The translations under genes were made by a program, and so were the position numbers. A stretch of DNA of 64,000 bases, from assembly GCF_964204645.1 (NCBI RefSeq), contig NC_134030.1, forward strand, positions 1,223,355-1,287,354, written 5' to 3'. This document shows positions 12,378 through 57,701 of this stretch, one piece after another. The stretch comes from Tubulanus polymorphus (lineage: Eukaryota > Animalia > Nemertea). The notes under the pieces were generated by a model. That model did not search any database. It was not told the DNA's origin and saw nothing but the letters and a program-made list of their open reading frames with translations. Position 1 is the first letter of the stretch, and each line of letters begins with the position of its first letter.

Positions 12378-12408
<31 letters not shown>

Positions 12409-12455: not shown

Positions 12456-12509
<54 letters not shown>

Positions 12510-12553
12510 TGTTGTTATTTGACCGATTAGAAACAGGCGTCTCCGGAGGGGTG

Positions 12554-12586
<33 letters not shown>

Positions 12587-16406: not shown

Positions 16407-16438
<32 letters not shown>

Positions 16439-18805: not shown

Positions 18806-18819
18806 GTTTTCTTTGTTTG

Positions 18820-28596: not shown

Positions 28597-28667
28597 TCAC
28601 TGAACCAGAATAAGACTGACTGATATATTTTCAAATGATTTAATATTTTTACTTGTTTTTCTAGATA

Positions 28668-29905
28668 ATGCCAAAAGCTTTAAAGAAAACCCGGGGAGCG
28701 GGCCCCTCACATTCAAGCCCGTATAATAAAGTAAGTACAAATTTACTGCTTCCATGCTTATTTATTCATCCCATACTTAGTATTTTGTACCCCTGGGTCC
28801 AGTTTCACAAAAAGGATAAACGCCTTAATCGATTTAAGATAAACTGAATTAATGAAGAAATTAAATCGATTTAAGAGTTAAACCTGTTTGTGAAACTAGG
28901 CCCTGAATTGCATCTAGAATGAAAAAAAGAAAAAAAAATATTGAATATAACGTTGGTGAAATATTTCTGGATCTTTCTGGATTTCTGCTCAATGCATCGT
29001 TTAGTAAAATATCGATATTCTCTAAAAGTAAAGATATAAGAATAAAAATATTGTATTGAATCGTGATTAGTTACTGTATGCGCTGCTAGTTGTTGCCCAA
29101 CCCATAGCCTCATTTCTCTCCATTCTAAATTTGCATTGTTTAACATTGTCTGGTCGCTATGGAAACTATTTATTTAAGTTTCTTTGTTGTATCCATGGCA
29201 ACAGTAACGTTTAGGTAGTGGCACCAATTATGGGTCCCAACGTTCCCATGGCGATACATGAGAACATTTATCCTATTTTTGACCTTCATGACGTAAGATG
29301 GTAGTGAGTCGATGACGTCATTTTCGTCTCACCACTAATGAAAAAAAAAATGAAATGAAAAAAAAGGAAGAAATCGTTAGAATTACGTTTATAAAATTTT
29401 TCTGGATCGGCTAAATGTATTGTTCCATTAAATATCGACATTCTCTAAAATTATAGGCATCAATATCAAAATGATGATACAGCAGACTCCGCTTAACTCT
29501 GTTCTATTTGGACCATTAATTAACCGAATACCAACTTTTTAAAATTTTAGGATTTTAACTTTAAGGATCAGAAAATGTGTATGCAATTTCAACCGGGTAC
29601 CGAGTAGGGTGGCCGAGTCTACTGTAGTCTGCTGCCCCCTCGAATCCATTACCTTATTATCTCTAAATTTGCATTGTTTGACCTCGTCTGGTTGCTATGG
29701 AAACTATTTAGTTATATCAGGAACGGTTTTTTCGAGGTAACCAGTGGCAACATTTAACAGGCGTGTCCGTCCTAGAGATAAACTGTCTGATTTCACAGCC
29801 ACATCCGTCCTGGAGATAAACTGTTAGATAAACTCTGATTTCGCGTCTGTCCTATTTCTTGTCATTGTATGAATATGTTTTCTCTTTTATAGGGTACAGC
29901 GCAGC

Positions 29906-29936
<31 letters not shown>

Positions 29937-32900: not shown

Positions 32901-35900
32901 CTGTTGTGTTCATTTTCTGTTGCATTGATTTATATATTATTTCTATTTACAGTTGTCAAACAACAGCAGCAGCAGCAACAGCAGCAGCAGCGCACCCCTC
33001 CCGCCGGAGACGCCTCCCGACTTGCAAGCAAGAAGTAAGTTCAGTCTTCAAATACAATTTCAACGCATTCAATTTTTTGTATGGCGTTAAAACGGTTAAA
33101 GTTGTGACTAGTTTTCATAACTCCGTGACGTCATATTTCCATCGAGTACCGGACCCTTTCCTATGTTTTTTGCCAATTTGGATTGAATGATCGCCAGCGG
33201 TTTTTCTATACGACCCGGCTCTGCTGTATTGCATTTAGCCATCCTTTTTCTTGGCGTTTTTATAAGAAGGTGTTTGATTTTGTCTCTAAGGGATTTAGGA
33301 ATTTAAGAGACACTTGTACTTTCTATGCAGTGAGTTTGTTCTGTTTTTGTTCCCTCGTGAATTTTATTTTTGTTTGAATCAAATCAAATCAGTGCATCTT
33401 TCTTGAATTGCGTGTATGTTATAATATTATGTAAGTTATAACGTTAAAATATCTGTTATATTTAAACCGAATATTTAATTGTTGTATTTTGAATGCGATA
33501 ATGCCGCTACCTGCTAAAGTCCAGCGTCGTCATCGTGAGGGATGCGGTCATCTGTTCGGGCCCTGATTACGTTCTGTGTTCATCCTGTTGGGCTACATCG
33601 GGCGTTATATGAGTTAATCCTTCCTCGACTTGCGGATTGTGGTCGGAAGATCTATGGGTTCGGGCCGATAAGTCCCGGAAACAGAAAGTACAGTTTCTGC
33701 CGATGTGCCCATTGATGTCTCTATTTCAGAACATCACAGCGGTCGCCGGCTGTACAAGCACGGTCGGCTTCCCAACTCCTTTCTCTGAGGAGGATCGCTG
33801 GTTCTCTAGTAACGGTCAGTCACCAGTCAATCAACGGTTCAGCTGGTTCAGTTTCCCAGGTATCGGCGCGCGACAGTCGGGATACCTGCACAGGAACTCA
33901 GGTCCGGTCCGGGCTACTCCGAGCACCGGTCCGGTCCAGGCCTCACTGGGTAATGAACATCTGGTCCGGTCCGGGCGGCTTCGAGCACCGGTCCGGTCCA
34001 GGCATCACCAGATACTGAACATCCTGTCCAGTCAGCTCCGTGCACCGGTCCGGTCCAGGCATCACCGGGTACTGAACATCTGGTCCGGTAGCTTCGAGAA
34101 CTGGTCCGGTCCAGGCATCACCGGATACTGAACATCCTGTCCGGTCAGCTCCGTGCACCGGTCCGGTCCAGGCATCACCGGATACTGAACATCTGGTCCG
34201 GTCAGCTTTGAGAACCGGTCCAGGCATCACTGGGTACTGAACATCTGGTCCGGTAGCTTCGAGAACTGGTCCGGTCCAGGTATCACTGGGTACTGAACAT
34301 CTGGTCCGGTAGCTTCGAGAACTGGCCTGGTCCAGGCATCACCGGGTACTGAACATCTGGTCCGGTCAGCTCTGTGCACCGGTCCGGTCCAGGCATCACC
34401 AGTTACTGGTCCGGTCCGGGCAGCTTTGAGCACCAGTCCATTCCAGGCATCACTGAGTACTGAACATCCAGTCTGGTCCGGTCCAGGCAACACCGGGTAC
34501 TGATCATCCAGTCCGGTCCGGTCCAGGCATCACTGGGTACTGAACATCTGCTCCGGTAGCTTCGAGAACTGGTCCGGTCCAGGCATCACCGGGTACTGAA
34601 CATCTGGTCCGGTAGCTTCGAGAACTGGTCCGGTCCAGGCATCACCGGGTACTGAACATCTGGTCCGGTAGCTTCGAGAACTGGTCCGGTCCAGGCATCA
34701 CCGGGTACTGAACATCTGGTCCGGTAGCTTCGAGAACTGGTCCGGTCCAGGCATCACTGAGTACTGAACATCCAGTCTGGTCCGGTCCAGGCATCACCGG
34801 GTACTGATCATCCAGTCCGGTCCGGTCCAGGCATCACCGGGTACTGAACATCCAGTCTGGTCCGGTCCAGGCATCACCAGTTACTGAACATCCAGTCCGG
34901 TCCGGTCCAGGCATCACTGGGTACTGAACATCCAGTCCGGTCCGGTCCAGGCATCACCGGGTTCTGATCATCCAGTCCGGTCCGGTCCAGGCATCACCGG
35001 GTACTGAACATCCAGTCCGGTCAGCTCCGTGCACCGGTCCGGTCCAGGCATCACTGGGTACTGAACATCCAGTCCGGTCCGGTCCAGGCATCACTGGGTA
35101 CTGAACATCCAGTCTGGTCCGGTCCAGGCATCACCGGGTACTGAACATCCAGTCTGGTCCGGTCCAGGCATCACTGGGTACTGAACATCCAGTCTGGTCC
35201 GGTCCAGGCATCACCGGGTACTGAACATCCAGTCTGGTCCGGTCCAGGCATCACTGGGTACTGAACATCCGGTCCGGTCCGGTCCGGTCCAGGCATCACC
35301 GGGTACTGAACATCCAGTCCGGTCCAGTCCAGGCATCACCGGGTACTGAACAGGGTTCGTCGCGGTGCTTGAAAAGCTTGAAATGGCTTGAATTTGAAAA
35401 ATACTACTCAAGCGCTTGAAAACAGCTTGAAAATAGATCGAAAGCTTGAAATAATTATTTTTGACTTGAAATAAAAAGTTATGGCTTGAAATGCTTGATT
35501 ATCACAAATTTTCTTCTTCGCGAATTTTTTTCGATGAAATCGCAGACAGAATATGTTCTTGAGTTGTTTCTACGCGTGCGTCATGTTTTAGGCATCAATA
35601 AAGAAATTAATTGAATTGTATTGAATCGCTATGAGGCTCTTGTGGTGAAACTCTACGGTGTCTGGAGACATGAACATACGGGGAAATTTCAGTCATGCAT
35701 GTTATCGAGCATTGATGTAAAATGGCATTGAAATCCCACACCAGGAGTGAGAGCCATGTTGAAGGCACCGCGACCTAGTCAAAGTCATTGAACATTACAA
35801 ATTTCGTATTAGGCCATACAAAAATCAAGGTCTGTTTGCCGTCATCCGACCGACCCGACTTCAAAGGTACCCAGTGGAAACTTTTTTCTTGGATTCATTG

Positions 35901-38900
35901 AAATAAATTGTATTTTTGATACAAATGGCCGACCCACTGCCGATGTATGAGCTATGTATGTTTGAAGTTAAGTGTGCATCATGTGAAAACATGCCTCGAC
36001 TATTTACTTGAAGTTTTCCAGGAAACTGGCAGTGTTCCAATAAGCTGCCATTCATTCTAAAGCTGGTAATGTTATAGCGTGCATATATTCAATCTACTGT
36101 TTCATTTTGAACGCAGATTTCGGATGTTGTTTCCGCTAAAAGTGGTGATGATAAATTTGTTGTTTTTTTTTGCCCCAAAATTTTGCAAAAAAAATGATGC
36201 TACCTTCCTACTGACTTATCCCAAAAATTTTAGTAGGTGTAACGGCAAAACAGACAATTAATTTGGGATGGCCAAATATCCAAATCTTGATTGATATGAA
36301 TATTTAAGCTAGGAAATGCTGAAAATCATTGTGATGAACAGGTTTCATCTCTAACAGAATCGTATCAACTCGGAGGTTCCACTGGAATCAAAATTTTACC
36401 TCTTTTTTAACATTTTTATACGAACCTGTTCAAAATAGGCAAATTGGCTGCGACTAACGAAAATTGCTTCCAACGTGCCTTAAAAAATAGCTTGAAAATG
36501 GTATAAATCTAGCTTGAAATGGCTTGAATTTCACTTGAGCTTGAGACAATGAACCCTGCTGAACATCTGGTCCGGTCAGCTTCCAGCACCGGTCCGGTCC
36601 AGGCATCACCGGTTACTGAACATCCGGTCCGGTCAGCTTCCAGCACCGGTCCAGGCATCACCAGGTACTGAACATCCGGTCCGGTCAGCTTCCAGCACCG
36701 GTCCGGTCCAGGCATCACCGGTTACTGGTCCGGTCCGGGCAGCTTTGAGCACCGGTCCGGTCCAGGCATCACTGAGTACTGAACATCCAGTCCGGTCCGG
36801 TCAGCTCCGAGCACCGGTCCAGGCATCACCAGGTACTGAACATCTGGTCTGGTCCGGGCGGCCTGGCATCAATGTTTCGAATTTAAAACATAGTTATCAT
36901 GGTTCTAGGTTTGGTAGAGGGCGCTCTTCTACCAGATGCAGGAGCGAGGTCACCTTCACGGAGATCGAGATCGAGGGATTATGATTGATTCTGTAGGAAC
37001 CATCATCATTCATCAGTTCAGGTCGAGGGACCGTTTAGGAAGTTCACGTCTTTGACGTCGAGGGACCGTTTAGGAAGTTCACGTCTTTCACGTCGAGGGA
37101 CCGTTTAGGAAGTTCACGTCTTTCACGTCGAGGGACCGTTTAGGAAGTTCACGTCTTTCACGTCGAGGGACCGTTTAGGAAGTTCACGTCTTTCACGTCG
37201 AGGGACCGTTTAGGAAGTTCACGTCTTTCACGTCGAGGGACCGTTAAGGAAGTCGTCACAATAATCAGGATTTCCGCGATTTCGAAAGTCAGATTTTAAA
37301 CTTGTTATTGTCATTGTAAGCTACCGCAGTTACAGGTAAGCCTATTCTTGATTGCCCGAGACAGGCGTGCAGATATTGTTCCCGACTTAAGTTTTTGGTT
37401 GATTTTCTTGTGACTTGTTTGTTTTAGGGGTGAGATGGATGAGCCTTATTGTTTTTTGACATATATAGGTCATCCAAGATGGCCGCCACAGCCATTTCAA
37501 TGTGTGAAATAGCCATTTTGAAGCTTGTGACAACTCTACAATCTACAGTTTCAGACCAATTTACCAATTACTTATTCTGTGGTTTCATAATGGTAGGAGA
37601 ATGAGCCTTATTGTTTTTGACATATATAGGTCATCCAAGAAGGCCGCCACAGCCATTTAAATGTGTGAAATAGCCATTTTGAAGCTTGTGACAACTCTAC
37701 AATCTACAGTTTCAGACCAATTTACCAATTACTTATTCTGTGGTTTCATAATGGTAAGAGGATGAGCCTTATTGTTTTTGACATATATAGGTCATCCAAG
37801 ATGGCCGCCACAGCCATTTCAATGTGTGAAATAGCCATTTTGAAGCTTGTTACCGCTCTACGGACTTAAGTTTTAAGCTTAAGACTTAAGATGGCCACCA
37901 CAGTTATATCAATGTGTTAAATCTTATCCGATTTGGAGCTTGTTACTGCTCTAAGATGTAGAGGTTTAGAGGTTTATAATTTCATTCATACTTGTACTGT
38001 GGTTTATTTATGGTGGTCAGAGGATGAGACCTATTACAATTTGCATTCTCTACTTGACTCACTGGTCAACGGTTAATATCTAGTTTGATAAATGTGGAGC
38101 ATGTCGGTGAATCATCCCCCCCCCTCCCCCGGACTCTGATCTCAATGTCTGATGTCAATCGTCAGCAGTTTCAATGGAATAGGCTCGATTAGGTGTGGAA
38201 CAAGTGGAATCCTCGATTGCCACAGTCAAACCTAAAGTATTAAGAGCTCAATTAGGTTCTTCTTTGCGTCTCTTCTCCGGTTGGAGTGCTCCAGTTTCCA
38301 CCGAATGGAGGAAGATTCGAGATGTGCAGATTCAAGTCCACCATGCGGACTCCGGCTCCGGCTCCGGCAGCTCAAGGTTCAGCCCGAACTCACACAATGC
38401 CATCTCAAGCATCCGTACTTTCTCAAGCGGCTACTAATGCTGTTTGGAGAACAAGTGCACAGCTCCAACATTCTCGTGCCCCTTCTGGTCAGAATAATTC
38501 TAGTTCATATCGGGGAATGCTCCTAAAAGGAGTTCTTCCTCTCGGAGAAACTCAAAATGAATGCTCGGGGCCAGTGAGAGGTTGTCTATAACGAGCAGCC
38601 ACCTACTGATCCGGCGTTCCCGGGTCGTATCACGGCGGCTACTGTCTTCAATTCTGAACACCTCCCGACATGCGCCCGAAAGCAGGTCACGAGACACTAA
38701 TCTCGTTAGCTCTCAAAGATCTGGCCAAAAAGAGAGCAATAGAACCAGTACGGGACGAAGCCACATCCGGCTGGTTTTCATGAATATTTATGCTCCTGAA
38801 GACCACAGGGCGTCGATGGACTGTCATTCCTCGAGTGGCACCTGGATATCCCGAGGCTTCCGATGACTAAAACAGGGAGGTAATTCAAGGTCTCCGTCGA

Positions 38901-41900
38901 GGTTAATGGGCGGCTTCATTGGACCTGAAAGATGTCAGGTTCCTATTCACCCGAAATCTCATCAATTTCACAGAATGAAGTGGAAACGCCGCCAGTTCCA
39001 GTTCAGGTCTCTTCCAGTCGGCCTCAGTACAGCCCACGCCCTGGGTATTTACCAGCTTGGGTCAAGTCCAGAAGGTACACTACACTCCAGGGCTGGGTTT
39101 CATAGATATGGAAGAAAAATAATTCCAGGGAACATTTTGAAATTTGTCAGTTATAACCATGGTTTCTCATTGTTAGTATGGTGGTTGAGGATTTATCCCT
39201 TTGGATAACTTTGATACTCAGTCTATGAAACCGGGTCCTGGAGTATTTGTCTGTTGGTTTACCTCGACGACTGGTTACTAGTACCAAACTCGACTATAGA
39301 ATGTCAGGAGGCGGTGACCGCTGTCGATCGCTGTCGTAGACTTAGTTCACCAGTTCCGCGTAAACTAAGTAAAATCTCACTTGATGCCGTCCCAACAGTT
39401 CACATCTCCGGATCAGCACGGTCTTTCCGTCCATGGCTCGAGTAGCCAAACTTCAAGAAGCGTAGTTACCACAAACGAGAGGACAGCTAGTTATCGGTGA
39501 CGCCTGTGGCTAAATGCAATACCGCACTGCCAGGGGTCGTATCTCTGGCTATCTACACATTCAGAGAATATTAACTAAAACCATAGGAAAGGGTCAAGCA
39601 CTACTCCGAAAAAAAACTAATTTTATTTCCAAAAAATTATGATATTATATGGATTGCATGCTGTGTGGAAGAAGTTTTCAAAATTATTTAGGAGCTTATT
39701 ATAATTTGAATGCATGAATTGAGAGCAATTTGAAATGTGTTGATATCCGAAAGTGTCTCCATTGACTTCACTCATTCACCTGATGAAGCTTCTATACATT
39801 AGTACCCAAAGCTTGTGTGTCAAATAAACTAGTTACACGTCCTATAAAGTACTACTTGTCTCGTTATATATTCTAAACCCCAGTTAACAATTCCAGTAAG
39901 TCAGGTTTAGGGAATAGATATTTAAACCTTGAGATGATACCGATGTGATACAATTCCAGTAAGTCAGGTTTAGGGAATAGATATTTAAACCTTGAGATGA
40001 AACCGATGTGATACAATTCCAGTAAGTCAGGTTTAGGGAATAGATATTTAAACCTTCAGATGATACCGATGTGATACAATTCCAGTAAGTCAGGTTTAGG
40101 GAATAGATATTTAAACCTTGAGATGATACCGATGTTATACAATTCCAGTAAGTCAGGTTTAGGGAATAGATATTTAAACCTTGAGATGAAACCGATGTGA
40201 TACAATTCCAGTAAGTCAGGTTTAGGGAATAGATATTTAAACCTTCAGATGATACCGATGTGATACAATTCCAGTAAGTCAGGTTTAGGGAATAGATATT
40301 TAAACCTTCAGATGATACCGATGTAATACAATTCCAGTAAGTCAGGTTTAGGGAATAGATATTTAAACCTTGAGATTAAACCGATGTTATACAATTCCAG
40401 TAAGTCAGGTTTAGGGAATAGATATTTAAACCTTGAGATTAAACCGATGTAATACAATTCCAGTAAGTCAGGTTTAGGGAATAGATATTTAAACCTTCAG
40501 ATGAAACCGATGTGATACAATTCCAGTAAGTCAGGTTTAGGGAATAGATATTTAAACCTTGAGATGAAACCGATGTGATACAATTCCAGTAAGTCAGGTT
40601 TAGGGAATAGATATTTAAACCTTCAGATGATACCGATGTGATACAATTCCAGTAAGTCAGGTTTAGGGAATAGATATTTAAACCTTCAGATGAAACCGAT
40701 GTGATACAATCCCAGTAAGTCAGGTTTAGGGAATAGATATTTAAACCTTCAGATGAAACCGATGTGATACAATCCCAGTAAGTCAGGTTTAGGGAATAGA
40801 TATTTAAACCTTCAGATGATACCGATGTAATACAATTCCAGTAAGTCAGGTTTAGGGAATAGATATTTAAACCTTGAGATGATACCGATGTGATACAATT
40901 CCAGTAAGTCAGGTTTAGGGAATAGATATTTAAACCTTCAGATGAAACCGATGTGATACAATCCCAGTAAGTCAGGTTTAGGGAATAGATATTTAAACCT
41001 TGAGATGAAACCGATGTGATACAATTCCAGTAAGTCAGGTTTAGGGAATAGATATTTAAACCTTGAGATGATACCGATGTTATACAATTCCAGTAAGTCA
41101 GGTTTAGGGAATAGATATTTAAACCTTCAGATGAAACCGATGTGATACAATTCCAGTACGTCAAGTTTAGGGAATAGATATTTAAACCTTCAGATGATAC
41201 CGATGTAATACAATTCCAGTAAGTCAGGTTTAGGGAATAGATATTTAAACCTTGAGATGATACCGATGTGATACAATTCCAGTAAGTCAGGTTTAGGGAA
41301 TAGATATTTAAACCTTGAGATGAAACCGATGTAATACAATTCGATTAAGTCAGGTTTAGGGAATAGATATTTAAACCTTGAGATGAAACCGATGTGATAC
41401 AATTCCAGTAAGTCAGGTTTAGGGAATAGATATTTAAACCTTGAGATGATACCGATGTGATACAATTCCAGTTAGTCAGGTTTAGGGAATAGATATTTAA
41501 ACCTTGAGATGATACCGATGTGATACAATTCCAGTAAGTCAGGTTTAGGGAATAGATATTTAAACCTTGAGATGAAACCGATGTGATACAATTCCAGTAA
41601 GTCAGGTTTAGGGAATAGATATTTAAACCTTCAGATGATACCGATGTAATACAATTCCAGTAAGTCAGGTTTAGGGAATAGATATTTAAACCTTGAGATG
41701 ATACCGATGTGATACAATTCCAGTAAGTCAGGTTTAGGGAATAGATATTTAAACCTTGAGATGATACCGATGTGATACAATTCCAGTAAGTCAAGTTTAG
41801 GGAATAGATATTTAAACCTTCAGATGATACCGATGTAATACAATTCCAGTAAGTCAGGTTTAGGGAATAGATATTTAAACCTTGAGATGATACCGATGTG

Positions 41901-44900
41901 ATACAATTCCAGTAAGTCAGGTTTAGGGAATAGATATTTAAACCTTGAGATGATACCGATGTGATACAATTCCAGTAAGTCAGGTTTAGGGAATAGATAT
42001 TTAAACCTTGAGATGAAACCGATGTGATACAATTCCAGTAAGTCAGGTTTAGGGAATAGATATTTAAACCTTCAGATGATACCGATGTAATACAATTCCA
42101 GTAAGTCAGGTTTAGGGAATAGATATTTAAACCTTCAGATGATACCGATGTGATACAATTCCAGTAAGTCAGGTTTAGGGAATAGATATTTAAACCTTCA
42201 GATGAAACCGATGTGATACAATTCCAGTAAGTCAGGTTTAGGGAATAGATATTTAAACCTTCAGATGATACCGATGTAATACAATTCCAGTAAGTCAGGT
42301 TTAGGGAATAGATATTTAAACCTTCAGATGAAACCGATGTAATACAATTCCAGTAAGTCAGGTTTAGGGAATAGATATTTAAACCTTCAGATGAAACCGA
42401 TGTGATACAATTCCAGTAAGTCAGGTTTAGGGAATAGATATTTAAACCTTCAGATGAAACCGATGTGATACAATCCCAGTAAGTCAGGTTTAGGGAATAG
42501 ATATTTAAACCTTCAGATGATACCGATGTGATACAATTCCAGTAAGTCAGGTTTAGGGAATAGATATTTAAACCTTCAGATGAAACCGATGTGATACAAT
42601 CCCAGTAAGTCAGGTTTAGGGAATAGATATTTAAACCTTCAGATGATACCGATGTGATACAATTCCAGTAAGTCAGGTTTAGGGAATAGATATTTAAACC
42701 TTCAGATGATACCGATGTGATACAATTCCAGTAAGTCAGGTTTAGGGAATAGATATTTAAACCTTCAGATGAAACCGATGTGATACAATTCCAGTAAGTC
42801 AGGTTTAGGGAATAGATATTTAAACCTTGAGATGATACCGATGTAATACAATTCCAGTAAGTCAGGTTTAGGGAATAGATATTTAAACCTTGAGATGATA
42901 CCGATGTTATACAATTCCAGTAAGTCAGGTTTAGGGAATAGATATTTAAACCTTGAGATTAAACCGATGTAATACAATTCCAGTAAGTCAGGTTTAGGGA
43001 ATAGATATTTAAACCTTCAGATGAAACCGATGTGATACAATTCCAGTAAGTCAGGTTTAGGGAATAGATATTTAAACCTTGAGATTAAACCGATGTAATA
43101 CAATTCCAGTAAGTCAGGTTTAGGGAATAGATATTTAAACCTTCAGATGATACCGATGTCATACAATTCCAGTAAGTCAGGTTTAGGGAATAGATATTTA
43201 AACCTTGAGATGAAACCGATGTGATACAATTCCAGTAAGTCAGGTTTAGGGAATAGATATTTAAACCTTCAGATGAAACCGATGTGATACAATTCCAGTA
43301 AGTCAGGTTTAGGGAATAGATATTTAAACCTTCAGATGATACCGATGTGATACAATTCCAGTAAGTCAGGTTTAGGGAATAGATATTTAAACCTTCAGAT
43401 GAAACCGATGTGATACAATTCCAGTAAGTCAGGTTTAGGGAATAGATATTTAAACCTTGAGATGAAACCGATGTTATACAATTCCAGTAAGTCAGGTTTA
43501 GGGAATAGATATTTAAACCTTGAGATGAAACCGATGTGATACAATTCCAGTAAGTCAGGTTTAGGGAATAGATATTTAAACCTTCAGATGATACCGATGT
43601 AATACAATTCCGGTAAGTCAGGTTTGATATTTAAACCTTGAGATGATACCGATGAATTTAGCAATTTTGAATGAATTAAACCAATATGAGATTTCGATCC
43701 TAAGAATATTGGAAGCTTGTGTTTAACGTTACTAAATATTAATATTATATAAAGCTAGAAGGACACGAGCGTATCCATTTTTCGCCCGATCGCGACGATT
43801 AAATTCGCCGGTGAATTTATACGCCCGATACGAGCGGGTACCGATCTATCTATAAATCGGCCATCACGGTGATTTCGTCGCCCGCCGACATTAAACATGT
43901 TCGATATTTACGCCGGTGTTCGGGTCACTTGTTAATTCGCTCGGCTTGTCGGCAAGCTTAAAAAGATTTAGAAAAAACTAGAAATTCTCATTCCTGAATG
44001 AACTGGATTCATCTGGGTTCAGTTTCATGAGACACAGTTCAAACTGCTCTTGAATTTGAGTTTGTAATTAATGTATGTGATTATAATGAATTGTATTTTT
44101 GTTTTACAGCTTTGGCATTTCGGTTAAGTCGTGCGTTCCGGCGGGAGGAGTTCGTCAGAATATTTCTACCGGAGTGTAAGTAGTTTAACTATTTTCATAC
44201 AATATCATTTAGTGTGACGTGTGTTACTGATTCAGGCACGGATCCAGGAATGTTTCCAAGACGGGGTTCATAAAAATGCTGACTAAAATCTCTAATAATA
44301 GCCGGGGCCTATACGGCATATTTTTTGGCCAAACATAAGGCCTTTTTTTAATAGCATGGTTTGGTTGCTCCCAAAATTTGAAGAAACATAAAATAAAAAA
44401 GAATTAGAAAAAAATTTTTTTATTCCTGTCTGTGAAACAAATTCAGTGAAAAACCGAGCAAAAAAGATTTTTCACCTCGGCCGAATGAGAATCCTGGATT
44501 GAACGATGAAACAATTGAAAAACGCGAAGTTCTTTTTTGATCGCAGTGTGCAGAATTCAAACTTTCCAAGAATCATTTGTTCGGACATATGTATATTGCC
44601 CTATTGACAGTTCCCTCTTCCTTCTAAAAGTGATTTTATCTCACTGAGGGAATTTTTAAAAAATTTTCTCTGAAATGATATGGTAGCGTTTTTTTTTTTG
44701 CTTTAAAAATTTTTTGGTAGCCGATCAGCGGGGTCACGACCCCTGAAACCCTCCCTGGATCCGCGCCTATGATATCTCCTCAAAATCTAATAAAAACTTT
44801 CAATGAATTAATGCTGTAATGACGATATGTAGCCATCTGTCTATTTGAATGCATTTGCAAAAAGACAAAAAGAAATAGTAGCAGAATTTTGGCTAAAAGT

Positions 44901-47714
44901 TTAGAATACCCAAATTCAACATTGCTTGCAGCAGACGGTATTTCCGCCATTTTGGTTAACAGGGGATTCCCCCCTCCGGTACTTCCCATGATCAATAGTG
45001 TCTATGACGCGTTGCGTACGGAATGCCATGGAATTCCCTCACATGATTTATGATAATAATGTTTACTTGCATTCTGATTGGTTAAAATCGCGTGTAGTTT
45101 GAACGTAGGCAATGTTTACATTTGTAACGTCACCGGCGAGTCGCTGACATTAACGTAGTCATTGAGTTAACATTATCTTGCACTGAATGGTGATATCAAT
45201 CGCATTCATTTTATAAATATTTTGAATATGAATTTGTTTTTATATATCAACTGCGAGTAACAGTGTTACGCTATTGAGTCTTAAGAGACAGCCTTTATGG
45301 ACCTTATTGGTTGTTATAACTCACAAGCTGACTGAGTTAGCATTCTGGATCCGTCAGATTAGTTACTTCTAGAAAATATGTTAGTCACATTTTCTGACTA
45401 TATTCTGGAAAACAGTGGAAGCTTGTATCCACCCTAGATTAGAACCAATCAGAATAGAACCAATCAGAATACACTATTTTACAGAAAATGTATTTATGAC
45501 AATTGCGTAAGGTTTTAGTAAAATAGTGTTTTTTCTCGAGTAGTTGCCGAAGAAGCATAAAAATTTGATTCAATTTCATTCAGATTTAAACAAACAAATC
45601 GAATTTCATTTCATTCAGCGCAAACTTCAAATCTAATTAAAATTTTGTTCAGTATGAATAAGTTGCAAATCATTGAGAGGAAAAAATAATTAATTGTGTT
45701 ACTTAAAAAAATCACAATTGTACTGTGTTTATCAAAACAGGAGACCACAGGACCTTTGGTCCTCTAGTATTCTTTTCCTAGTTATTCCAAAAACACTAAA
45801 ACAGTCCAATCAGCGATCGCTGCCAGACCAACACGATTACATTGAAATCAAACTTAAGTAACATCAGGCGCCCCCTGTTGGAATAATATTCATAGCCGTA
45901 GCATCGAAACCATTCGACTTGTTGTTTAATGTATTTCTCTCTATTTTTATTTTACAGTGATGAACATTTTAGAAGAATGTCCGTTTGGGGACTTGGTGGG
46001 GGAATTCAAAAGAAACTTGGTTCCCGATAGGATACCACCACCGGTTAATCCTATGTCGCCCGCTGCTGCCCCTCCCCCACGTCCATTAAATTCGCCTCAG
46101 CAGCGGCCTGTCAGACAGCCGCCCCCGGCCGCCACTCGTTCGTCAGACAGAGTCCGGGGACGGCTGTTTGAAGGAGATCTGACGGAGGTAAGAATCTTTA
46201 TTTGTTTTCATATTTTATTCAGGATATCAGTTGAAGTTCAGCAAATAAATTACCAGACCTGTAAACAGAAGAGTAGTCATAAATTTCCATTTGCGGGTAA
46301 AACCCCATAGTCGAAAACCTTCGGTTATTGATCTATATCTGCTTAAGACCAATGGTTGTACACACGAGTGCGAAAACTTATCGCTCAAACTTTGATTGTA
46401 TCCATGGTAACGCGTACAGTATACTATGCGTGACTTACCGTTTCCTATCACTGGAATACAATACTGTTTTTGACCATGAGCGCCATCTGCGGCGGTCATA
46501 ACGGACTGACTGGTGATTGGCTGAAATGCTCGTCTACCGTGGTGACGATTATTCGGTGTTACACGTGCAGCAGACACGTCTCTGAATATCTAACATTTGA
46601 TTGTTGTAACTCATCGGGAAAAATATGTTTATGAGTCGATTTTTTGTCGAAATTTTGTTCGGCAGAAAATTGGCTGCGTACGTCAAGAAGGCGGCTGATA
46701 TTTGTATCGTGTGACCCCTCGTCCCGGTAATATGCCGACCCACGTACACCTGAGACCAGTTGCATAGTCAGAGCTTAGAATTAAGACCGTTTTAAGACCA
46801 ACTTAGTTCTATAGCCAATCTAATAACTTAAGACCAGTCTTTAGATTTAAGACCACTTTTGGACTTAAGTCTTGACCATGGAATCGGCCCCAGATGCTTA
46901 TTCCGCTGTATTGGATGCTGACGTGCTCGTGTCTTCCAGCAATGTTGTTATTCACCAAAAATATCATGTTTTGTTCGAATAACACAATTCATCTGAGTCT
47001 GGGTTTAACGGATGACACGTTCAAACAGAACTACGAAATCAATATCAGAAGTCCTTTTATATTGAAACGGTCCCAGAAGTCCCTGTTATAATGGGTACTT
47101 TTTCAAAAAAAGTAACGAGAACTCCGATGGCTTTCCGTATCGGTAAAAACTAACTATTTCTATGAGCGTCACTCGTAGATTTACCGAAACGCCACCTTGT
47201 GACACGATATCCTAACTACGTATAGGTGTTTTATTTGCTGAATCGCTGGTTTCTCATTCTCATTTTTTATACTTGTGTTTAATTTTATACTAAACAAATT
47301 TTTCACTTTTTCTCTTTACAGACACGACCACCGCCAAAAAAAACAAGAACAAAAAGGAAAAGAAAAGTTGCGGTCGTCGTGGCTCCGCAGGGAGGAGGAG
47401 CAAGAGTGGTCCCGGCGGATGGTGCGGCTGACGAAGGTAATCGGGAGGAAGGGGAGGGGATAAATAGGAAGCGGCCGAGGAGGGATGGTGGTGGGGCTGG
47501 GGATGGTGCGGGTCCTGCTCCTCCTGCTCCTCCATCCGTATCTCGGGCGGTCACTCGTTCACTCGCCAAAAAGCTGGCGAGTGAACGAGTGGCCCGAGAG
47601 GTAGAGGTGGTGGCCCGACATACGGATGGAATGTGGGAGGAGCGGCTTCGTTCGGGGACAATTCCGGATTTGTTAACCGATTTGAAAAATATTCTTTCAG
47701 TGAAGGGATATTAG
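28668..47714 (+). CDS. Orphan gene, 9 coding exons, ~344 aa: join(28668-28730,29893-29982,30392-30436,30813-30839,32704-32742,32953-33034,44110-44175,45958-46187,47322-47714)
   Basis: All introns GT-AG with pyrimidine tracts; intron phases 0,0,0,0,0,1,1,0 give one 1035-nt ORF: MPKALKKTRGAGPSHSSPYNK|GTA(Q)17KFNISMSGID|FLPTTPPSGVPPSTP|DLSPIQHMD|HQFASEARSPSLN|LSNNSSSSNSSSSAPLPPETPPDLQAR|TLAFRLSRAFRREEFVRIFLPE|LMNILEECPFGDLVGEFKRNLVPDRIPPP...VRGRLFEGDLTE|TRPPPKKTRTKRKRK...NILSVKGY*; paralogous exons show synonymous and conservative changes. Confidence 0.78.
28796..28902. mobile_element. MITE, PIF/Harbinger-like
   Basis: TIRs ggtccagtttcacaaa / tttgtgaaactaggcc with 3-bp ctg duplication on both sides. 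Confidence 0.75.
29153..29751. promoter_or_regulatory. Intronic cluster of RFX X-box-like and CRE motifs
   Basis: gtcgctatggaaac 29153, gtatccatggcaac 29189, gttcccatggcgat 29242, gttgctatggaaac 29691, gtaaccagtggcaac 29737; tgacgtaa 29289, tgacgtca 29313. Confidence 0.45.
31636..31948. mobile_element. MITE-like element with CTCF-like motifs in its subterminal inverted repeats
   Basis: Perfect 14-bp TIR atgggatacccgca / tgcgggtatcccat; inner inverted pair tccaccagatggcgc / gcgacacctggtgga. Confidence 0.65.
33895..36870. repeat. GC-rich ~40-60-bp minisatellite (ccggtccggtccaggcatcaccgggtactgaacat...) inside the DIRS gag region, split by a DNA transposon
   Basis: Arrays at 33895-35350 and 36559-36870. 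Confidence 0.95.
35351..36558 (+). mobile_element. Internally deleted hAT-type DNA transposon with 5-bp TSD (hAT5-like)
   Basis: TIR cagggttc / gaaccctg; TSD ctgaa at 35346-35350 and 36559-36563; subterminal gcttgaaa repeats; zinc-finger-like fragment MALKSHTRSESH at ~35722. Confidence 0.8.
37022..37255. repeat. 35-bp tandem repeat, ~6.7 copies
   Basis: gtcgagggaccgtttaggaagttcacgtctttcac. Confidence 0.95.
37310..38130. mobile_element. Insertion with internal ~162-bp tandem repeats, possibly a non-autonomous Helitron/Helentron-type element
   Basis: Three-plus units containing caagatggccgcc...gccattttg (37441, 37603, 37764); short inverted motif gctacc...ggtaagc at the 5' end; family assignment inferred from architecture only. 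Confidence 0.4.
39887..43654. repeat. 63-bp satellite, ~60 copies
   Basis: caattccagtaagtcaggtttagggaatagatatttaaacctt(g/c)agatga(t/a)accgatgt(g/a/t)ata. Confidence 0.99.
44233..44770. mobile_element. MITE, Harbinger-like, absent from the paralogous intron
   Basis: TIR aggcacggatccagg / cctggatccgcgcct; the empty site is visible at ~9410-9450 on the - strand. Confidence 0.8.
46750..46893. mobile_element. Short palindromic MITE
   Basis: Imperfect TIRs ctgagaccagttgcatagtc / gaccatggaatcggccccag; internal ttaagacc repeats. Confidence 0.7.
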
Positions 47715-48317
47715 GTGCCTTGAACGCATGAGTCGTTCATGCGCGCCTAATATGCCTTCACTGAAAAAAAATCAACTATAACATGTACCACATATTTTTT
47801 GATTTAATTTTAGTCCAATTCCACAATTATTTCGGCTTACAATAGTGTCAATTCAATTCTTTAAAGCCCAAAGCACCTTTTTGACTCAACATCCAGTATG
47901 AAGGTGGCCGGGAATCGGGCCTGTTTTCTTCCATTTTTGTATCCCGCCCAGCATACTGGTTGTTGACTCGAAAAGGTGCTCGCTCTGGGAGCTTATCAAA
48001 GGCAGGTGATGGGAAAGGTGCCATCACACACTCTCCTTTGATAAGTTTCCTAGAGTGTCACGGGCTTTAACGGGTTGAATTCACTATAATACCAATTTTC
48101 CAAAATCAATTTAATTTCTTTCAGGCCATTCTTTTTCCATGTTTTTCTGGTACATGTTATGGTTGATTTCCATTTTCGAAAATCCGGAATTGAAGCCGTT
48201 CGAAGTCGGGGGGATGGTGGTGGGGTTGGGTTAGTTTAGGGTTCCTCTCTGATTACCTTCTTTAGCTCATCATCCGTGCAGGTGGCGCTTGCTCTTCTAG
48301 CCGGTGTTCCCTGGGGT
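47382..48317 (+). other. ~930-nt nested fold-back RNA structure spanning the last exon (CDS + 3' UTR)
   Basis: At least 11 properly nested complementary segment pairs with G-U wobble on the + strand (see findings); closes just before AATAAA at 48344. Confidence 0.8.
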
Positions 48318-48329: not shown

Positions 48330-48825
48330 TTTAAAAAATCAAAAATAAAAAAAAAATTATAAAATCTTTAAAAATCTCATCTCATTTCATCCAATTTATT
48401 TATTTGCGGGTGCGATGCCTATCGCACCCATTCATGTCATCCATCAAAAAAAAAATTAAAACTAAAAACGAAAAAAAATATAAAAATTTAAAAAATCTCA
48501 TCTCATTTCATCCAATTTATTTGCGGGTGCGATTCCTATCGCACCCATTCATGTCATTCATCCAAAAAAAATAAAAAACGAAAAACGAAAAAAAAATATA
48601 AAAATTAAAAAAATCTCATCTCATTTCATCCAATTTATTTATTTGCGGGTGCGATTCCTATCGCACCCATTCATGTCATTCATCCAAAAAAAAATAAAAA
48701 ACTAAAAACAAAAAAAAAATATTAAAATTAAAAAATCTCATCTCATTTCATCCAATTTATTTATTTGCGGGTGCGATTCCTATCGCACCCATTCATGTCA
48801 TTCATCCAAAAAAAATTTAAAAACT
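48330..48825. repeat. ~122-bp tandem repeat x4, each with a perfect 9-bp GC-rich hairpin
   Basis: gggtgcgat-(t/g)cct-atcgcaccc at 48408, 48525, 48647 and 48769, between A-tracts. Confidence 0.92.
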
Positions 48826-49064
48826 AGAAATTAAAGTTCTAAGTTTGTTGTTAGATTCTATTCAAAGAACGTTGTAAAGTTCTTAATTTGTCGTAAAAAA
48901 CGTTAGAAAAAAAGAACTTCTTAAAGTTCTCAATCTGCCGTAAAATGCAATTGAAAAGATTATAACTCACATGAAAATTAAAAAGATAAAATAATTTATA
49001 AATAATCATTAATAAAAATTGAACTTTGGTCTCGCAATGTTTCCCCGTTATGCATTTTTTACTC

Positions 49065-51687: not shown

Positions 51688-53350
51688 GAATTGTTCATAC
51701 AACTGTCAACATGGAGTTCATCTCACAAGCAAATTAGGTAATTATCTTATGAAATTGTATGAATTGCCAATTTAACATTTTTGCATTTCAAGTAGGTGTA
51801 ATTGAATGTTTGTCAACCTTACTCTTATAAAACTGTGTTAACCGTTGAACAGGATTCTAAGACTGTGCAGAAAACCCGTTATCGCTGCTTTGCACCTATA
51901 ATTATCTGATAAATTAGTATGGAATGCCAATTTTACATTTTTGCATTTAAGTTTAAGTGAGTTTAAAATCACGTTTCATTTGTTGTTTATTTTGTCTTTT
52001 CAGTTTTCAATTTGCCGAGGTCAGTCATCAAAAACTGTTACAACGGAAACTAAGATAACAAAGACTTGATTTGGCAAAGATTGAAGAAATCCTGCGAAAA
52101 GATTATTCATGAATTGTTCATACAACTGTCAACATGGAGTTCATCTCACAAGCAAATTAGGTAATTATCTTATGATTTTGTATGAAATGCTAATTTTTAC
52201 TCGTTAATTTTTTACAAATAAGTTGACTTTGAAATCTTTATTAATTTCTTGTTTATTTTGTTTTTTCAGTTTTCAATTTGCCGAGATCAGTCATCAAAAA
52301 CTGTTACAACGGAAACTAAGATAACAAAGACTTGATCTGGCAAAGATTGAAGAAATCCTGCGAAAAGCTTATTCATGAATTGTTCATACAACTGTCAACA
52401 TGGAGTTCATCTCACAAGCAAATTAGGTAGTTATCTTATGATTTTGTATGAAATGCTAATTTTTACTCGTTAATTTTTTACAAATAAGTTGACTTTGAAA
52501 TCTTTATTAATTTCTTGTTTATTTTGTTTTTTCAGTTTTCAATTTGCCGAGATCAGTCATCAAAAACTGTTACAACGGAAACTAAGATAACAAAGACTTG
52601 ATTTGGCAAAGATTGAAGAAATCCTGCGAAAAGCTTATTCATGAATTGTTCATACAACTGTCAACATGGAGTTCATCTCACAAGCAAATTAGGTAGTTAT
52701 CTTAGGATTTTGTATGAAATGCTAATTTTTACTCGTTAATTTTTTACAAATAAGTTGACTTTGAAATCTTTATTAATTTCTTGTTTATTTTGTTTTTTCA
52801 GTTTTCAATTTGCCGAGATCAGTCATAAAAAAACTGTTACAACGGAAACTAAGATAACAAAGACTTGATTTGGCAAAGATTGAAGAAATCCTGCGAAGAG
52901 ATTATTCAAGAATTGTTCATACAACTGTCAACATGGAGTTCATCTCACAAGCAAATTAGGTAATTATCTTATGGTTTTGTATGAAATGCTAATTTTACAT
53001 TTTTGCATTTAAGTTTAAATGAGTTTAAAATCACGTTTCATTTGCTGTTTATTTTGTCTTTTCAGTTTTCAATTTGCCGAGATCAATCGTCAGAAAACTG
53101 TTTCAACGGAAACTAAGATAACAAAGACTTGATTTGGCAAAGATTGAAGAAATCCTGCGAAGAGATTATTCAAGAATTGTTCATACAACTGTCAACATGG
53201 AGTTCATCTCACAAGCAAATTAGGTAATTATCTTATGATTTTGTATGAAATGCTAAATTTTACTCGTTATTTTTTTACTAATAAGTTGACTTTGAAATCT
53301 TTATTTATTTCTTGTTTATTTTGTCTTTTCAGTTTTGAATTTGCCGAGAT
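51688..53350 (+). ncRNA. ~266-bp tandem exon-intron repeat; five non-coding hairpin exons (52004-52160, 52270-52426, 52536-52692, 52802-52959, 53066-53223)
   Basis: Each unit has a ttttcag acceptor, a 157-158-nt exon closed in all three frames, and an ag|gta donor; the exon 5' half is an ~85-nt imperfect hairpin. Confidence 0.6.
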
Positions 53351-54402: not shown

Positions 54403-55320
54403 AAGATAATCACTGATCAAGATTGACAGTTATAATCCATAATTGTTGAACTTGATCAGAGATTTTCAAGATCGATTTTAAGGTGATTCAGAAGTTTAAA
54501 TCTGATGTTTTAATCTCTGGGACTCAGATATTAAATCAATAGATTTTTACTGCTGAATGATCTTCATGTACAGATGAGCTACAATTGTTCCTAGTGTGTT
54601 CTGTTAAGACTGATTAAAGGGTGGAAAAACTTGACTCAAATTCAAATTGAGTCGAGTTTTTCCAAGATAATCTCTGATCAAGATCAGCAGTTACCGGTAT
54701 AATCCATAATTGTTGAACTTGATTGGTGATTTTCAAGATCTGTTTTAAGGTGATTCACAAGTTTAAATCTGATGTTTTAATCTCTGGGTTCCAGATATTA
54801 AATCAATAGATTTTTACTGCTGAATGACCTTCGTGTTCAGATAAGCTACAATTGTTCCTAGTGTGTTCTGTTAAGAAAGGGTGGAAAAACTTGACCCAAA
54901 TTCAAATTGAGTCGAGTTTTTCAAAGATAATCTCTGATCAAGATCGGCAGTTATAATCCATAATTGTTGAACTTGATTGGAGATTTTCGAGAACTGTTTT
55001 TAAGGTGATTCAGAAGTGTGAATCTGATGTTTTAATCTCTGGGTTTCAGAGATTAAATCAATAGGTTTTAACTTCTGAATCACTTCGGGTTTAGGTAAGT
55101 TAAAGTGTTTCCTATTGTAATCTGTTAAACTGATTAAAGGGTGGAAAAAATTGATTCAAATTAATAATCTGAATCACAATTCACAATTAAATGAACTTTT
55201 TTAAGGTGATTCAGAAGTATAAATCTGATGTTTTAATCTCTGGGTTTCAGAGATTAAATCAATAGGCTTTACTTCTGAATGACTGTTAGGTTTTGATAAG
55301 TTGTAAGTTGTTCCTATTGT
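54403..55320 (+). ncRNA. ~260-bp tandem repeat x3.5, each unit with three long hairpins (hpRNA/pri-miRNA-like)
   Basis: Stems of ~25, ~38 and 17 bp; many copy-to-copy substitutions keep pairing through G-U. Confidence 0.6.
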
Positions 55321-55651: not shown

Positions 55652-56537
55652 AAACCTTTAAGTAAGATGCTCACTTACAGATTCATAAAATTGACCCTTA
55701 TTATCTTGTCATCTGCAGAACCATCTCAAGAGGCTTAAACCAAGAATTTCTTGTAATGTTCAACAAATGTGAATTACATTAAGTAATTTTTGAGATCGAC
55801 TAGCACCAGTATTGAGTTTTTTCTAAATCACAGTCTACTTATTTTATATTCATCCACGATTTCATAGCTCTTTAACTATTCAACCCTTTCCCTGATGGGC
55901 CCTGGCCCCAATTGCTGAACCCAGTTCTCCAAGTCTAACGTCTGGGTTTAATGGTTTATCAGAGAATTAATGGATTAATTGGAAATAATCTAACAATCAA
56001 TAAAGTTGTTCTTTTTTGATACGGGCTAGAAGTTGAGGGGCCCGCGCCCCGGGTTTTCTTTAAAGCTTTTGGCATTATCTAGAAAAACAAGTAAAACCTT
56101 TAAGTAAGATGCTCACTTACAGATTCATAAAATTGACCCTTATTATCTTGTCATCTGCAGAACCATCTCAAGAGGCTTAAACCAAGAATTTCTTGTAATG
56201 TTCAACAAATGTGAACTACATTAAGTAATTTTTGAGATCGACTAACACCAGTATTGAGTTTTTTCTAAATCACAGTCTACTTATTTTATATTCATCCACG
56301 ATTTCATAGCTCTTTAACTATTCAACCCTTTCCCTGATGGGCCCTGGCCCCAATTGCTGAACCCAGTTCTCCAAGTCTAACGTCTGGGTTTAATGGTTTA
56401 TCAGAGAATTAATGGATTAATTGGAAATAATCTAACAATCAATAAAGTTGTTCTTTTTTGATACGGGCTAGAAGTTGAGGGGCCCGCGCCCCGGGTTTTC
56501 TTTAAAGCTTTTGGCATTATCTAGAAAAACAAGTAAA
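55652..56537. repeat. ~441-bp tandem duplication, each unit ending in a - strand MPKALKKTRGAGPSTSSPY exon lacking its donor
   Basis: 55652-56096 repeated at 56096-56537; ATGs at ~56075 and ~56517. Confidence 0.9.
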
Positions 56538-56589
56538 AATTATTAAATCATTTGAAAATATATCAGTCAGTCTTATTCTGGTTCAGTGA

Positions 56590-57075
56590 ACTAATTCTCT
56601 ATATGGTGCATTTAGGGGTCCAGGGACACCACATCCACTAATTCTCTATATGGTGCATGTAGGGGTCCAGGGACACCACATCCACTAATTCTCTATACGA
56701 TGCATGTAGGGGTCCAGGGACACCACATCCACTAATTCTCTATACGGTGCATGTAGGGGTCCCGGGACACCACATCCACTAATTCTCTATATGGTGCATG
56801 TAGGGGTCCAGGAACACCACATCCACTAATTCTCTATACGATGCATGTAGGGGTCCAGGGACACCACATCCACTAATTCTCTATATGGTGCGTGTAGGGG
56901 TCCAGGAACACCACATCCACTAATTCTCTATACGATGCATGTAGGGGTCCAGGGACACCACATCCACTAATTCTCTATATGGTGCGTGTAGGGGTCCAGG
57001 AACACCACATCCACTAATTCTCTATACGATGCATGTAGGGGTCCAGGGACACCACATCCACTAATTCTCTATATG
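56590..57075. repeat. 47-bp satellite, ~10 copies
   Basis: Same unit as 16588-17859. Confidence 0.97.
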
Positions 57076-57347
57076 TCGAGGGAGCTCTATCAATCAAGGA
57101 ACAGTCGGCTCACAAGCAGCCCCTGCCCAAAAGGTTTTGACATTATATTTTCAAAAGCTCTAGTTGTTCTGTAGAACCGAGAGCGGAGCTCTGACTTGTT
57201 CCCCTCACTGCTGAGGTCTACTTTCTCTGATTCGCTGATTGGCTTCTCTTTGGTACATTTTAGATGATCAAAAACTAGAAACTGTCATGCGTTTATTCAT
57301 TTGGGTATATGTTAAAATTCTTTTACAGTAATGGCATATTAGGCACA

Positions 57348-57701
57348 TCAAAACAAATCCGGAATTGTCCCCGAACGAAGTGGCTCCCTCCACTCTCCAT
57401 CAGTATGCCGGGCCACCACCTCTACCTCTCGGGCCACTCGATCACTCGCCAGCTTTTTGGCGAGTGAACGAGTGACCGCCCGAGATACGGATGGAGGAGC
57501 AGGAGGAGCAGGACCCGCACCTGCCCCAGCCCCACCACCATCCCTCTTCGGCCTCTTCCTATTTATCCCCTCCCCTTCCTCCCGATTACCTTCGTCAGCC
57601 GCACCATCCGCCGGGACCACTCTTGCTCCTCCTCCCTGCAGAGCCACGACGACCGCAACTGGTACTTTTCGGTTTCTCATGGTTTCCCCACCATCTTTCA
57701 A
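57348..57701 (-). pseudogene. In-frame copy of most of the last coding exon (117-aa ORF)
   Basis: Matches 47379-47670 in the same frame; lacks the original acceptor and the 3' UTR pairing arms. Confidence 0.75.

Follow-up and report, generated by a model that had tools for sequence, protein, structure and literature searches.

A reading frame predicted to pair with its own 3′ UTR in an amplified gene of the nemertean Tubulanus polymorphus

Among the systems closest to the structure described here, the bicoid 3′ UTR is grouped with the translational control element of Drosophila nanos. Drosophila hpRNAs are characterized by G-U-rich stems, and so is the present fold, which spans positions 47382-48317 of a 64,000-nt stretch of genomic DNA (the window). 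The nanos element, which is recognized by Glorund and dFMRP, is a 3′ UTR Y built of a base stem and two stem-loops (PMC9262583). The Y-shaped module in our fold shares this outline and its modular construction, with a G-tract and double-stranded motifs as (here putative) protein sites. It differs in its size (246 nt versus 90), in the absence of any sequence relation and of a Smaug-type loop visible by eye in the Y module, and in its enclosure within stems formed with the reading frame. Like the duplexes recovered by STAU1 hiCLIP, the long stems are intramolecular, at least 20 bp long, poor in bulges, bridge hundreds of nucleotides to kilobases and lie in the 3′ region of an mRNA (PMC10164587). 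In contrast to the STAU1 duplexes classified within 3′ UTRs, 115 predicted pairs connect coding sequence with UTR and are nested within a branched fold of 936 nt that shows covariation. Pre-miRNA-sized hairpins in exons of coding transcripts are known from the Microprocessor-cut DGCR8 mRNA and eIF4H exon 5 (PMC4006729) and resemble our hairpins H1 and H2, but those are local, whereas here a long-range coding:UTR cage and twin G-tracts are added.

The hpRNAs, such as Nmy/Tmy versus the Dox family, are separate inverted-repeat transcripts that are cut by Dcr-2 and carry a fold-back arm antisense to a fast-evolving amplified family (PMC10317233). The nemertean structure has such an arm and likewise doubles back on one strand through stems that tolerate G-U pairs. 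Unlike hpRNAs, it is the coding mRNA itself, is branched, contains helices of at most 22 bp and occurs in a phylum reported to be without DICER2. It lacks an extended duplex for several phased cuts (the outer stem of ~58 bp is bulged and followed by multiloops) and a separate dedicated locus, as the antisense arm corresponds to exon 9 of the gene itself. With a protein-coding host gene and short, branched stems, the fold is not a Drosophila-type hpRNA. No description of the same architecture was found by the searches made, and a cellular reading frame paired with its own 3′ UTR under evolutionary support is rarely documented.

The host gene comprises 344 codons in nine exons on the + strand. 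Its frame is clean when phase and stops are checked exon by exon, which identifies + as the sense strand. Exon 1 (28665-28730, ATG at 28668) would encode a basic N-terminus with a PY-type nuclear-signal-like motif at its end. Exons 2-6 (29893-29982, 30392-30436, 30813-30839, 32704-32742 and 32953-33034) are small, AG/GT-bounded and Q/P/S-rich. They are followed by exon 7 (44110-44175, phase 1-1), exon 8 (45958-46187, phase 1-0) and the coding part of exon 9 (47322-47714), which contributes 130 codons and ends in TAG at 47712-47714. Among paralogues, pN is 0.08-0.47 versus a pS of 0.34-0.64 in exon 7, and pN is also below pS in exon 8, for which 79 matches exist in the genome. The host gene is under purifying selection, and the encoded protein is basic, mostly disordered and probably nuclear. 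Protein databases were searched per exon rather than with the joined gene model. Exons 8 and 9 gave zero matches in Pfam, a 5.8-billion-protein set, 50% representatives and the ESM Atlas, which makes the gene an orphan at this search sensitivity. A secreted toxin was rejected as the product, since the start is not signal-like and only a single Cys is present.

An earlier note had drawn nested pairs and branches over the last exon, and all 12 of these helices are contained in the minimum-free-energy structure of 47382-48317. Most arms form 8-31 predicted pairs (e.g. 18/18, 22/22, 25/28, 26/29 and 22/22), the outermost being the weakest (8/13). The 17-bp stem 47552-47568/47575-47591, described there as perfect, is an exact reverse complement, and the fold does start ~60 nt past the splice acceptor and end 27 nt before the AATAAA at 48344. 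The + strand folds with -430.2 kcal/mol, where shuffles average -306.7 +/- 7.4 (z -16.7), and the - strand with -366 (z -13.4). Of 21 other 936-nt stretches sampled within the window, even the best has only about half the energy excess over shuffles seen here, and mean pair probability reaches at least 0.9 in 12 of 14 helices. On the + strand, 33 G-U pairs and zero single A-C mismatches are found, versus 14 and 8 on the - strand, an asymmetry that recurs in both L018 and L019, two of the paralogues.

The outer long-range stem (~58 bp with bulges) joins a coding 5′ arm at 47385-47450 to a 3′ arm at 48242-48316 that is antisense to the gene's own exon 9. Its duplex energy is -88.6 versus -53.4 +/- 5.4 for shuffled arms (L018 -87.8, L019 -80.8). 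Hairpin H1 (47517-47643, z -12.1) is coding throughout and capped by a 20-bp stem at 47549-47594. Stem 2 pairs coding positions 47644-47671 with 48180-48207, and hairpin H2 (47695-47766, z -10 to -11) consists of 31 bp with a 4-nt loop and A-rich single-stranded flanks. The stop codon UAG is predicted to be fully paired within H2 in all copies read. Stem 3 (47769-47790/48148-48169, 22 bp), whose 3′ arm lies with that of stem 2 in 48148-48207, encloses the Y module at 47842-48087 (z -11.1). This module is formed by a base stem (47842-47869/48062-48087) and the branches H3 (47872-47980) and H4 (47981-48057), which abut inside a junction and are left without single-stranded flanks once the Y base forms. 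Variation in H3 is mostly apical, and H4 hardly varies. Intact copies fold more stably than antisense fragments, both in H1 (-84 to -89 versus -57 to -76 kcal) and in H2 (-46 versus -30 kcal). The longest uninterrupted helix measures 22 bp, and multiloops separate the stems. In total, 225 coding nucleotides of exon 9 are in predicted pairs, which corresponds to two thirds of the coding nucleotides of the fold and includes the stop codon.

Two features go beyond the earlier note, namely the amplification of the gene and two G-tracts. G-tract 1 (47482-47512, coding) and G-tract 2 (48208-48241, 3′ UTR) are each unpaired, contain four runs of at least three G and have a 20-nt core in common. They face each other within one junction and are the sole quadruplex-type motifs on the + strand of the window. 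Their loops of 8, 2 and 7-8 nt and the absence of competing predicted pairs agree with a quadruplex motif. With both quadruplexes the predicted energy drops from -430 to -449.5, whereby ViennaRNA chooses two-tier variants. The region of G-tract 1 (47479-47516) has 0/38 substitutions in L016-L019. G-tract 2 has 2/34 variable columns versus 36/130 in its flanks (p 0.006), and its core is exact in 32/32 copies that have a 3′ arm. Against a reading as selection, many young antisense fragments also carry exact G-tract 1. Within the 75-78% 3′-arm relatives on C4, no match to the G-tract 2 core was listed with one mismatch allowed.

The paralogues serve as a natural experiment, in which the stems are altered at 15-23% of their sites yet stay paired, the enclosed loop grows by kilobases and the G-tracts hardly change. 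Between the window and L018, 35 pairs changed, of which 24 were kept and 11 broken, against 24.5 expected to break. Eight were kept by two-sided change (0.98 expected, 0/20,000 shuffles). Between the window and L019, 30 of 47 changed pairs were kept, six by two-sided change (1.2 expected, p 0.0008). Watson-Crick pairs drifted 17 times to G-U and twice to A-C (p 0.0004, or p 0.005 when a 1.5:1 mutational bias is allowed). Synonymous divergence at third positions is 0.08-0.135 in paired and 0.23-0.32 in unpaired codons, compared with 0.24-0.45 in exon 8; the paired-unpaired difference gives Fisher p 0.002 for L019 and 0.09-0.11 for L018 and L016. Insertions of 1.8 and 4.5 kb, placed just inside stem 3, leave the coding:3′ UTR pairing of L018 and L019 in place. 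These copies were folded with short A linkers in place of the inserts, and in the whole 3.6-kb L019 exon, folded as well, the outer stem re-forms with 50 pairs. Compensatory change, strand-biased G-U drift, synonymous constraint and pairing across kilobase inserts thus bear out the earlier proposal of selection on an RNA whose 3′ UTR pairs with its own coding sequence, and the fold is very probably selected at the RNA level. L017 counts against this conclusion, as its exon-9 frame is open and its 3′ outer arms are lost. As the comparison uses three related lineages of one genome and takes the structure from the window copy, the covariation ranks below R-scape grade. The relatives at C4:8.93 Mb, C8:7.80 Mb, C6:16.48 Mb and C2:16.33 Mb, those on C1, C5 and C10, and the C9/C11 protein paralogues were left out of the comparison.

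The sense strand has no AATAAA from the stop codon to the 3′ arm, inserts included, so that the 3′ arms would belong to the transcript. Downstream follows a 122-nt tandem repeat (48332-48830, + strand) with a 9-bp hairpin, UCAU-rich flanks and an A-rich spacer that contains the AATAAA at 48344; all 150 matches listed adjoin family copies. The repeat region is a candidate for the 3′ end of the transcript, with the caveat that this AATAAA belongs to a tandem-repeat spacer and is missing from L019. By eye, the repeat lacks the flanking lower stem of an ENE-type triple helix, and that reading was rejected. Three read runs, compared with 4646 letters of the locus, cover the introns with zero splice joints and therefore behave as DNA. 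Another run, guessed to be RNA, gave one 223-nt contig with a tandem H3/H4 relative and no strand information.

The most likely reading, held tentatively and at a little under an even chance, is a cis-acting "closed" state of the mRNA for storage, repression or localisation. Since two thirds of the coding nucleotides are predicted to be paired, stop codon included, the full fold should be incompatible with elongating ribosomes and would mark a closed, untranslated mRNA. The long stems would be bound by double-stranded-RNA-binding proteins of the Staufen/ADAD type and the junction by G-tract or quadruplex binders of the hnRNP F/H or FMRP type, while the Y module could act as docking site. The mRNA would then be stored, repressed or transported until it is opened by translation. 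Stems that keep their shape and loops that keep their sequence are the pattern that protein docking predicts, and, like translational-control and localisation elements, the fold shows conserved secondary structure on the mRNA's sense strand. From the ampliconic, fast-evolving gene, a germ-cell setting may be guessed.

The main alternative, possible though rather unlikely, is that the fold instead serves RNase III. Drosha or Dicer-1 would release miRNA-like RNAs from H2, H3 or H4 or cleave the mRNA itself in a DGCR8-like autoregulation, or the long stems would yield siRNAs whose 3′-arm strand, antisense to the family's coding sequence, makes the amplified gene self-limiting. Exonic hairpins and DGCR8 mRNA are cut by Drosha (PMC4006729), and nemerteans retain siAGO (PMC11114477). 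The flanked, ~31-bp H2, the near-invariance of H4 with mainly apical variation in H3, the duplication of hairpin modules, the tandem H3/H4 relative in the presumed RNA contig, a 3′ arm that follows the changes of its coding partner in L018 and L019, six Piwi-domain loci in the genome, and antisense scrambled exon copies that resemble silencing loci all fit this explanation. Several observations do not. Nemertea are reported without DICER2, and the siRNA signature of a nemertean is weak (PMC11114477). A single Dicer-dimerisation-domain locus was found in an exon-wise search that can miss a diverged paralogue. H3 and H4 lack single-stranded flanks in the Y, and H2, with 31 of the ~35 bp typical of a pri-miRNA stem, closes with just 4 nt rather than an open apical loop. 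No described pri-miRNA family matches the fold: its Rfam matches score 22-27 bits where gathering would take 67-211, and nothing in the window reaches gathering level. The G-tracts are left unexplained. The Dicer processing after the Drosophila hpRNA model suggested earlier has lost ground in view of a coding host under purifying selection, helices of no more than 22 bp, the one Dicer-dimerisation locus and the reported lack of DICER2 (PMC11114477). With siAGO kept and DICER2 reportedly lacking, the fold offers a defined double-stranded substrate to ask for the fate of endogenous duplex RNA in nemerteans.

An unlikely, more specific model combines both ideas: the coding:3′ UTR helices would clamp the two G-tracts into a duplex-flanked quadruplex junction. 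This would act as a translation-sensitive switch, closed when untranslated and opened by ribosomes, and control whether the mRNA of an amplified and perhaps selfish gene is stored or cleaved by RNase III, in an animal apparently lacking Dicer-2.

Editing by ADAR is improbable. The 3′ UTR would be an editing-complementary sequence that recodes exon 9 or its stop, or hyper-editing would retain the RNA in the nucleus. Imperfect long duplexes span the coding sequence, the UAG is paired in H2, and four ADAR/ADAT-type deaminase loci are present in the genome. However, a target A opposite C is absent from the sense strands of the window, L018 and L019, a UAG-to-UIG change would add just Trp-Val-Pro, and the Y module and G-tracts stay unexplained. 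Stop-codon read-through as the main function was rejected separately, as the next stop follows three codons further.

Arrays at chromosome ends contain 29 near-identical copies of the gene, and diverged paralogues complete the family. The arrays run head-to-tail near contig ends, with mixed copy orientation on C8, in units of 30-64 kb that retain introns and satellites. The Y module occurs in three tandem copies in L019, in four equal-scoring copies on C5, C6 and C10 and as dispersed relatives elsewhere. In a genome scan, a structure model and a sequence-only model scored the best full-length Y modules about equally, while weaker ones lost 9-32 bits (uncalibrated). Exons 1-3 and 5-9 also occur next to the gene as antisense, scrambled copies, in a region rich in satellites and scrambled fragments. 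An ampliconic orphan gene with such copies may be tied to genetic conflict. A mobilisation or packaging signal is very improbable; the 30-64-kb unit would be selfish and spread by a helper retroelement or conflict-driven amplification, with the fold and 122-nt repeats as 3′ recognition structure. The terminal head-to-tail arrays, the equal-scoring Y modules and the likeness of the 122-nt repeats to hairpin-plus-tail 3′ ends speak for it. Against it, the window shows no conspicuous frame of at least 90 aa for a transposase, polymerase or capsid protein; all that can be read by eye is a decayed DIRS-like RT fragment. Introns and satellites are retained in the units, much as in segmental duplications, the C8 copies are in mixed orientation, and exact H3/H4 DNA patterns matched no viral or metagenome contigs. 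Least probable is a neutral by-product of inverted duplication, with hairpins templating DNA repair in a repeat region prone to rearrangement. Satellites and scrambled fragments do fill the region, hairpin-templated conversion can mimic compensatory change, and L017 lost its 3′ arm. Conversion at the DNA level, however, does not predict a one-strand G-U bias with zero A-C, pairing across 4.5 kb, the decay of H1 and H2 in antisense fragments or unpaired tracts that stay conserved. Most array units also carry a + strand copy of exon 1 upstream of exon 9, and a 13-mer of the stem 2 5′ arm recurs as inverted pairs in array copies.

The folding of the last coding exon and its 3′UTR into one branched structure (47382-48317), as claimed in the earlier note, was confirmed by structure prediction. 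Compared with dinucleotide shuffles, the 936-nt stretch has z −16.7 for the + strand (−430.2 kcal/mol) and z −13.4 for the − strand (−366 kcal/mol). All 12 helices listed by the note were recovered in the predicted structure, and its perfect 17-bp stem was exact on checking. The expected strand asymmetry was also seen, with 33 G-U pairs and no single A-C mismatch in the + strand fold vs 14 G-U pairs and eight A-C mismatches on the − strand. Mean pair probability is at least 0.9 in 12 of the 14 helices. The predicted fold pairs 225 of the 333 coding nucleotides that it contains, joins coding sequence to UTR through 115 pairs, and places the stop codon within hairpin H2 (47695-47766).

The structure sits in the ninth and last of nine coding exons (28668-47714), which, read exon by exon, give 344 codons with GT-AG introns throughout, compatible phases, and no internal stops. 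Exons 7 to 9 show pN < pS against the paralogues, so this is a real coding gene. Amino-acid identity to the diverged paralogue L019 is 43%, 58%, and 87% in exons 7, 8, and 9; exons 7 and 8 diverge fast despite pN < pS, and exon 9 is better kept. The predicted product is basic and Pro/Arg/Ser-rich, with one cysteine and stretches resembling nuclear signals, and is probably nuclear. Protein searches with single exons as queries found no relatives outside its own genome (exons 8 and 9 against Pfam, a 5.8-billion-protein set, 50% representatives, and the ESM Atlas). Within the genome, protein relatives at 45% identity lie on contigs C8, C9, and C11. CTCF-like motifs were read by eye at 45865-45880 (intron 7) and 46478-46495 (intron 8), with similar ones in paralogue L017.

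Exon 9 and the UTR occur in 29 copies of ~99% identity (18 on C6, 10 on C3, one on C8). Most of these are arranged head to tail, 30-64 kb apart and close to contig ends; five diverged copies (89-95%) lie on C8. Exon 1 is present upstream in most array units; it (28668-28730) and its copies range from 63 to 100% amino-acid identity, with exon 9 of those units at 98-100%, and the N-terminus is possibly fast-evolving or shuffled. A decayed DIRS-like reverse-transcriptase fragment (38880-39300, read by eye) lies inside the repeated unit.

Evolutionary support for the fold, as judged from sequence comparison, is unusually good. In paralogues L018 and L019, satellite-rich sequence of 4.5 and 1.8 kb splits its two halves just inside stem 3 (47769-47790/48148-48169), and the stems are retained. 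In tests that cover three mutually related lineages and take their reference structure from one of them, 24 of the 35 pairs changed between the window and L018 still pair, eight of them kept by two-sided change (0.98 expected; 0 of 20,000 shuffles reached 8), as do 30 of 47 for L019, six by two-sided change (p 0.0008); broken pairs number about half of those expected. Some changes at paired sites alter amino acids. Drift from Watson-Crick pairs led to G-U 17 times vs twice to A-C (p 0.0004). Synonymous divergence at third codon positions is 0.08-0.135 at paired vs 0.23-0.32 at unpaired sites, significant for L019 only. The outer duplex (47385-47450/48242-48316) has −81 to −89 kcal/mol in the window, L018, and L019 vs about −50 with shuffled partners, and it also forms on folding the L019 exon in its full 3.6-kb length. 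In L017 the 3′ arms are gone, and the exon-9 frame is still open; at L017:380-400, where these arms are deleted, an extra H3 copy is fused directly to a 122-nt repeat.

Exons 1-3 and 5-9 recur as scrambled fragments, all antisense to the gene, on the − strand at 9042-21000 and 56013-57909. H1 (47517-47643) and H2 are weaker in these fragments, several exon-9 pieces carrying deletions that weaken both. The regions are possibly a piRNA-type silencing locus.

Two G-tracts on the + strand, in the reading frame (47482-47512) and in the UTR (48208-48241), share a 20-nt core; no other four-run G3 motif occurs on that strand of the window. Both are predicted to be unpaired and to stand opposite one another in the junction that links the outer stem to stem 2 (47644-47671/48180-48207). 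Variable columns number 2 of 34 in the UTR tract vs 36 of 130 in the flanking paired sequence (p 0.006), and 32 copies carry the core of this tract without a mismatch. Four paralogues show no change in the coding tract, but this counts for less, since many young fragments also keep it intact.

The fold matched no Rfam family, and its sequence is unrelated to any named element. It departs from an hpRNA both in stem length and on the separate-locus criterion. Closest in mode of working would be a structured 3′UTR control element, from which the predicted fold differs by reaching into the reading frame. Elongating ribosomes must unwind helices of this kind, so the complete fold would belong to untranslated mRNA. 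Protein docking fits best, because the stems keep shape rather than sequence, the loops keep sequence, and a Y-shaped 3′UTR module is copied as a unit. We therefore favour, tentatively, a closed mRNP in which the folded mRNA would be stored, repressed, or transported. Precedents are the long-range duplexes bound by Staufen (PMC10164587) and, in Drosophila, the nanos TCE, which Glorund and dFMRP recognise (PMC9262583).

The main rival, processing by RNase III, is the less probable reading. In its favour, H4 (47981-48057) is nearly invariant, H2 resembles a Microprocessor substrate except that the loop is small, and the 3′ arm runs antisense to the gene family. Counting against it are the shortness of the helices, the recovery of one Dicer locus in the genome, and the reported absence of DICER2 from nemerteans together with a weak siRNA signature (PMC11114477). 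ADAR editing is improbable, a mobilisation signal slightly more so, and a neutral by-product the least probable of all. The closed mRNP and these alternatives are not fully exclusive of one another.

The Y-shaped 3′UTR module (47842-48087), formed by a base stem with H3 (47872-47980) and H4, occurs three times in L019, and L018 has one additional, well-paired H3. Module relatives of 78-84% identity lie at several further genome sites. Four dispersed ones (C5:13135715, C6:18210788, C10:4851213, and C10:5250174) have equal model scores (120.6 bits), which suggests recent spread within another repeat. H4-only matches are arrayed on the + strand of C8:15042412-15066560 at 2-5 kb spacing, adjoining a − strand family remnant. 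Five 3′-arm relatives (75-78%) stand in tandem at C4:8931082-8935849 with a ~1.08 kb period, adjoining an H4 match, and three outer-arm pieces at C1:31528062-31528420. The locus was found in no RNA run. Three read sets over it showed DNA-like behaviour; a fourth, guessed to be RNA, contained one contig with a tandem H3/H4 relative of ~192-nt period, a weak hint that bears on another locus only.

The 122-nt repeat follows the family copies and occurs nowhere else among the matches listed. The AATAAA at 48344 lies inside its A-rich spacer and is absent from the L019 equivalent; no sense-strand AATAAA was found upstream of the 3′ arm, inserts included. An exon-intron cassette at 51978-53350 forms a 266-nt tandem, whose tested hairpin is not significant (z −1.4). 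At 54403-55162 lie 267-nt tandem units, in which the first hairpin tested is significant whichever strand is folded (+, z −3.75; −, z −3.35) and the next segment is not.
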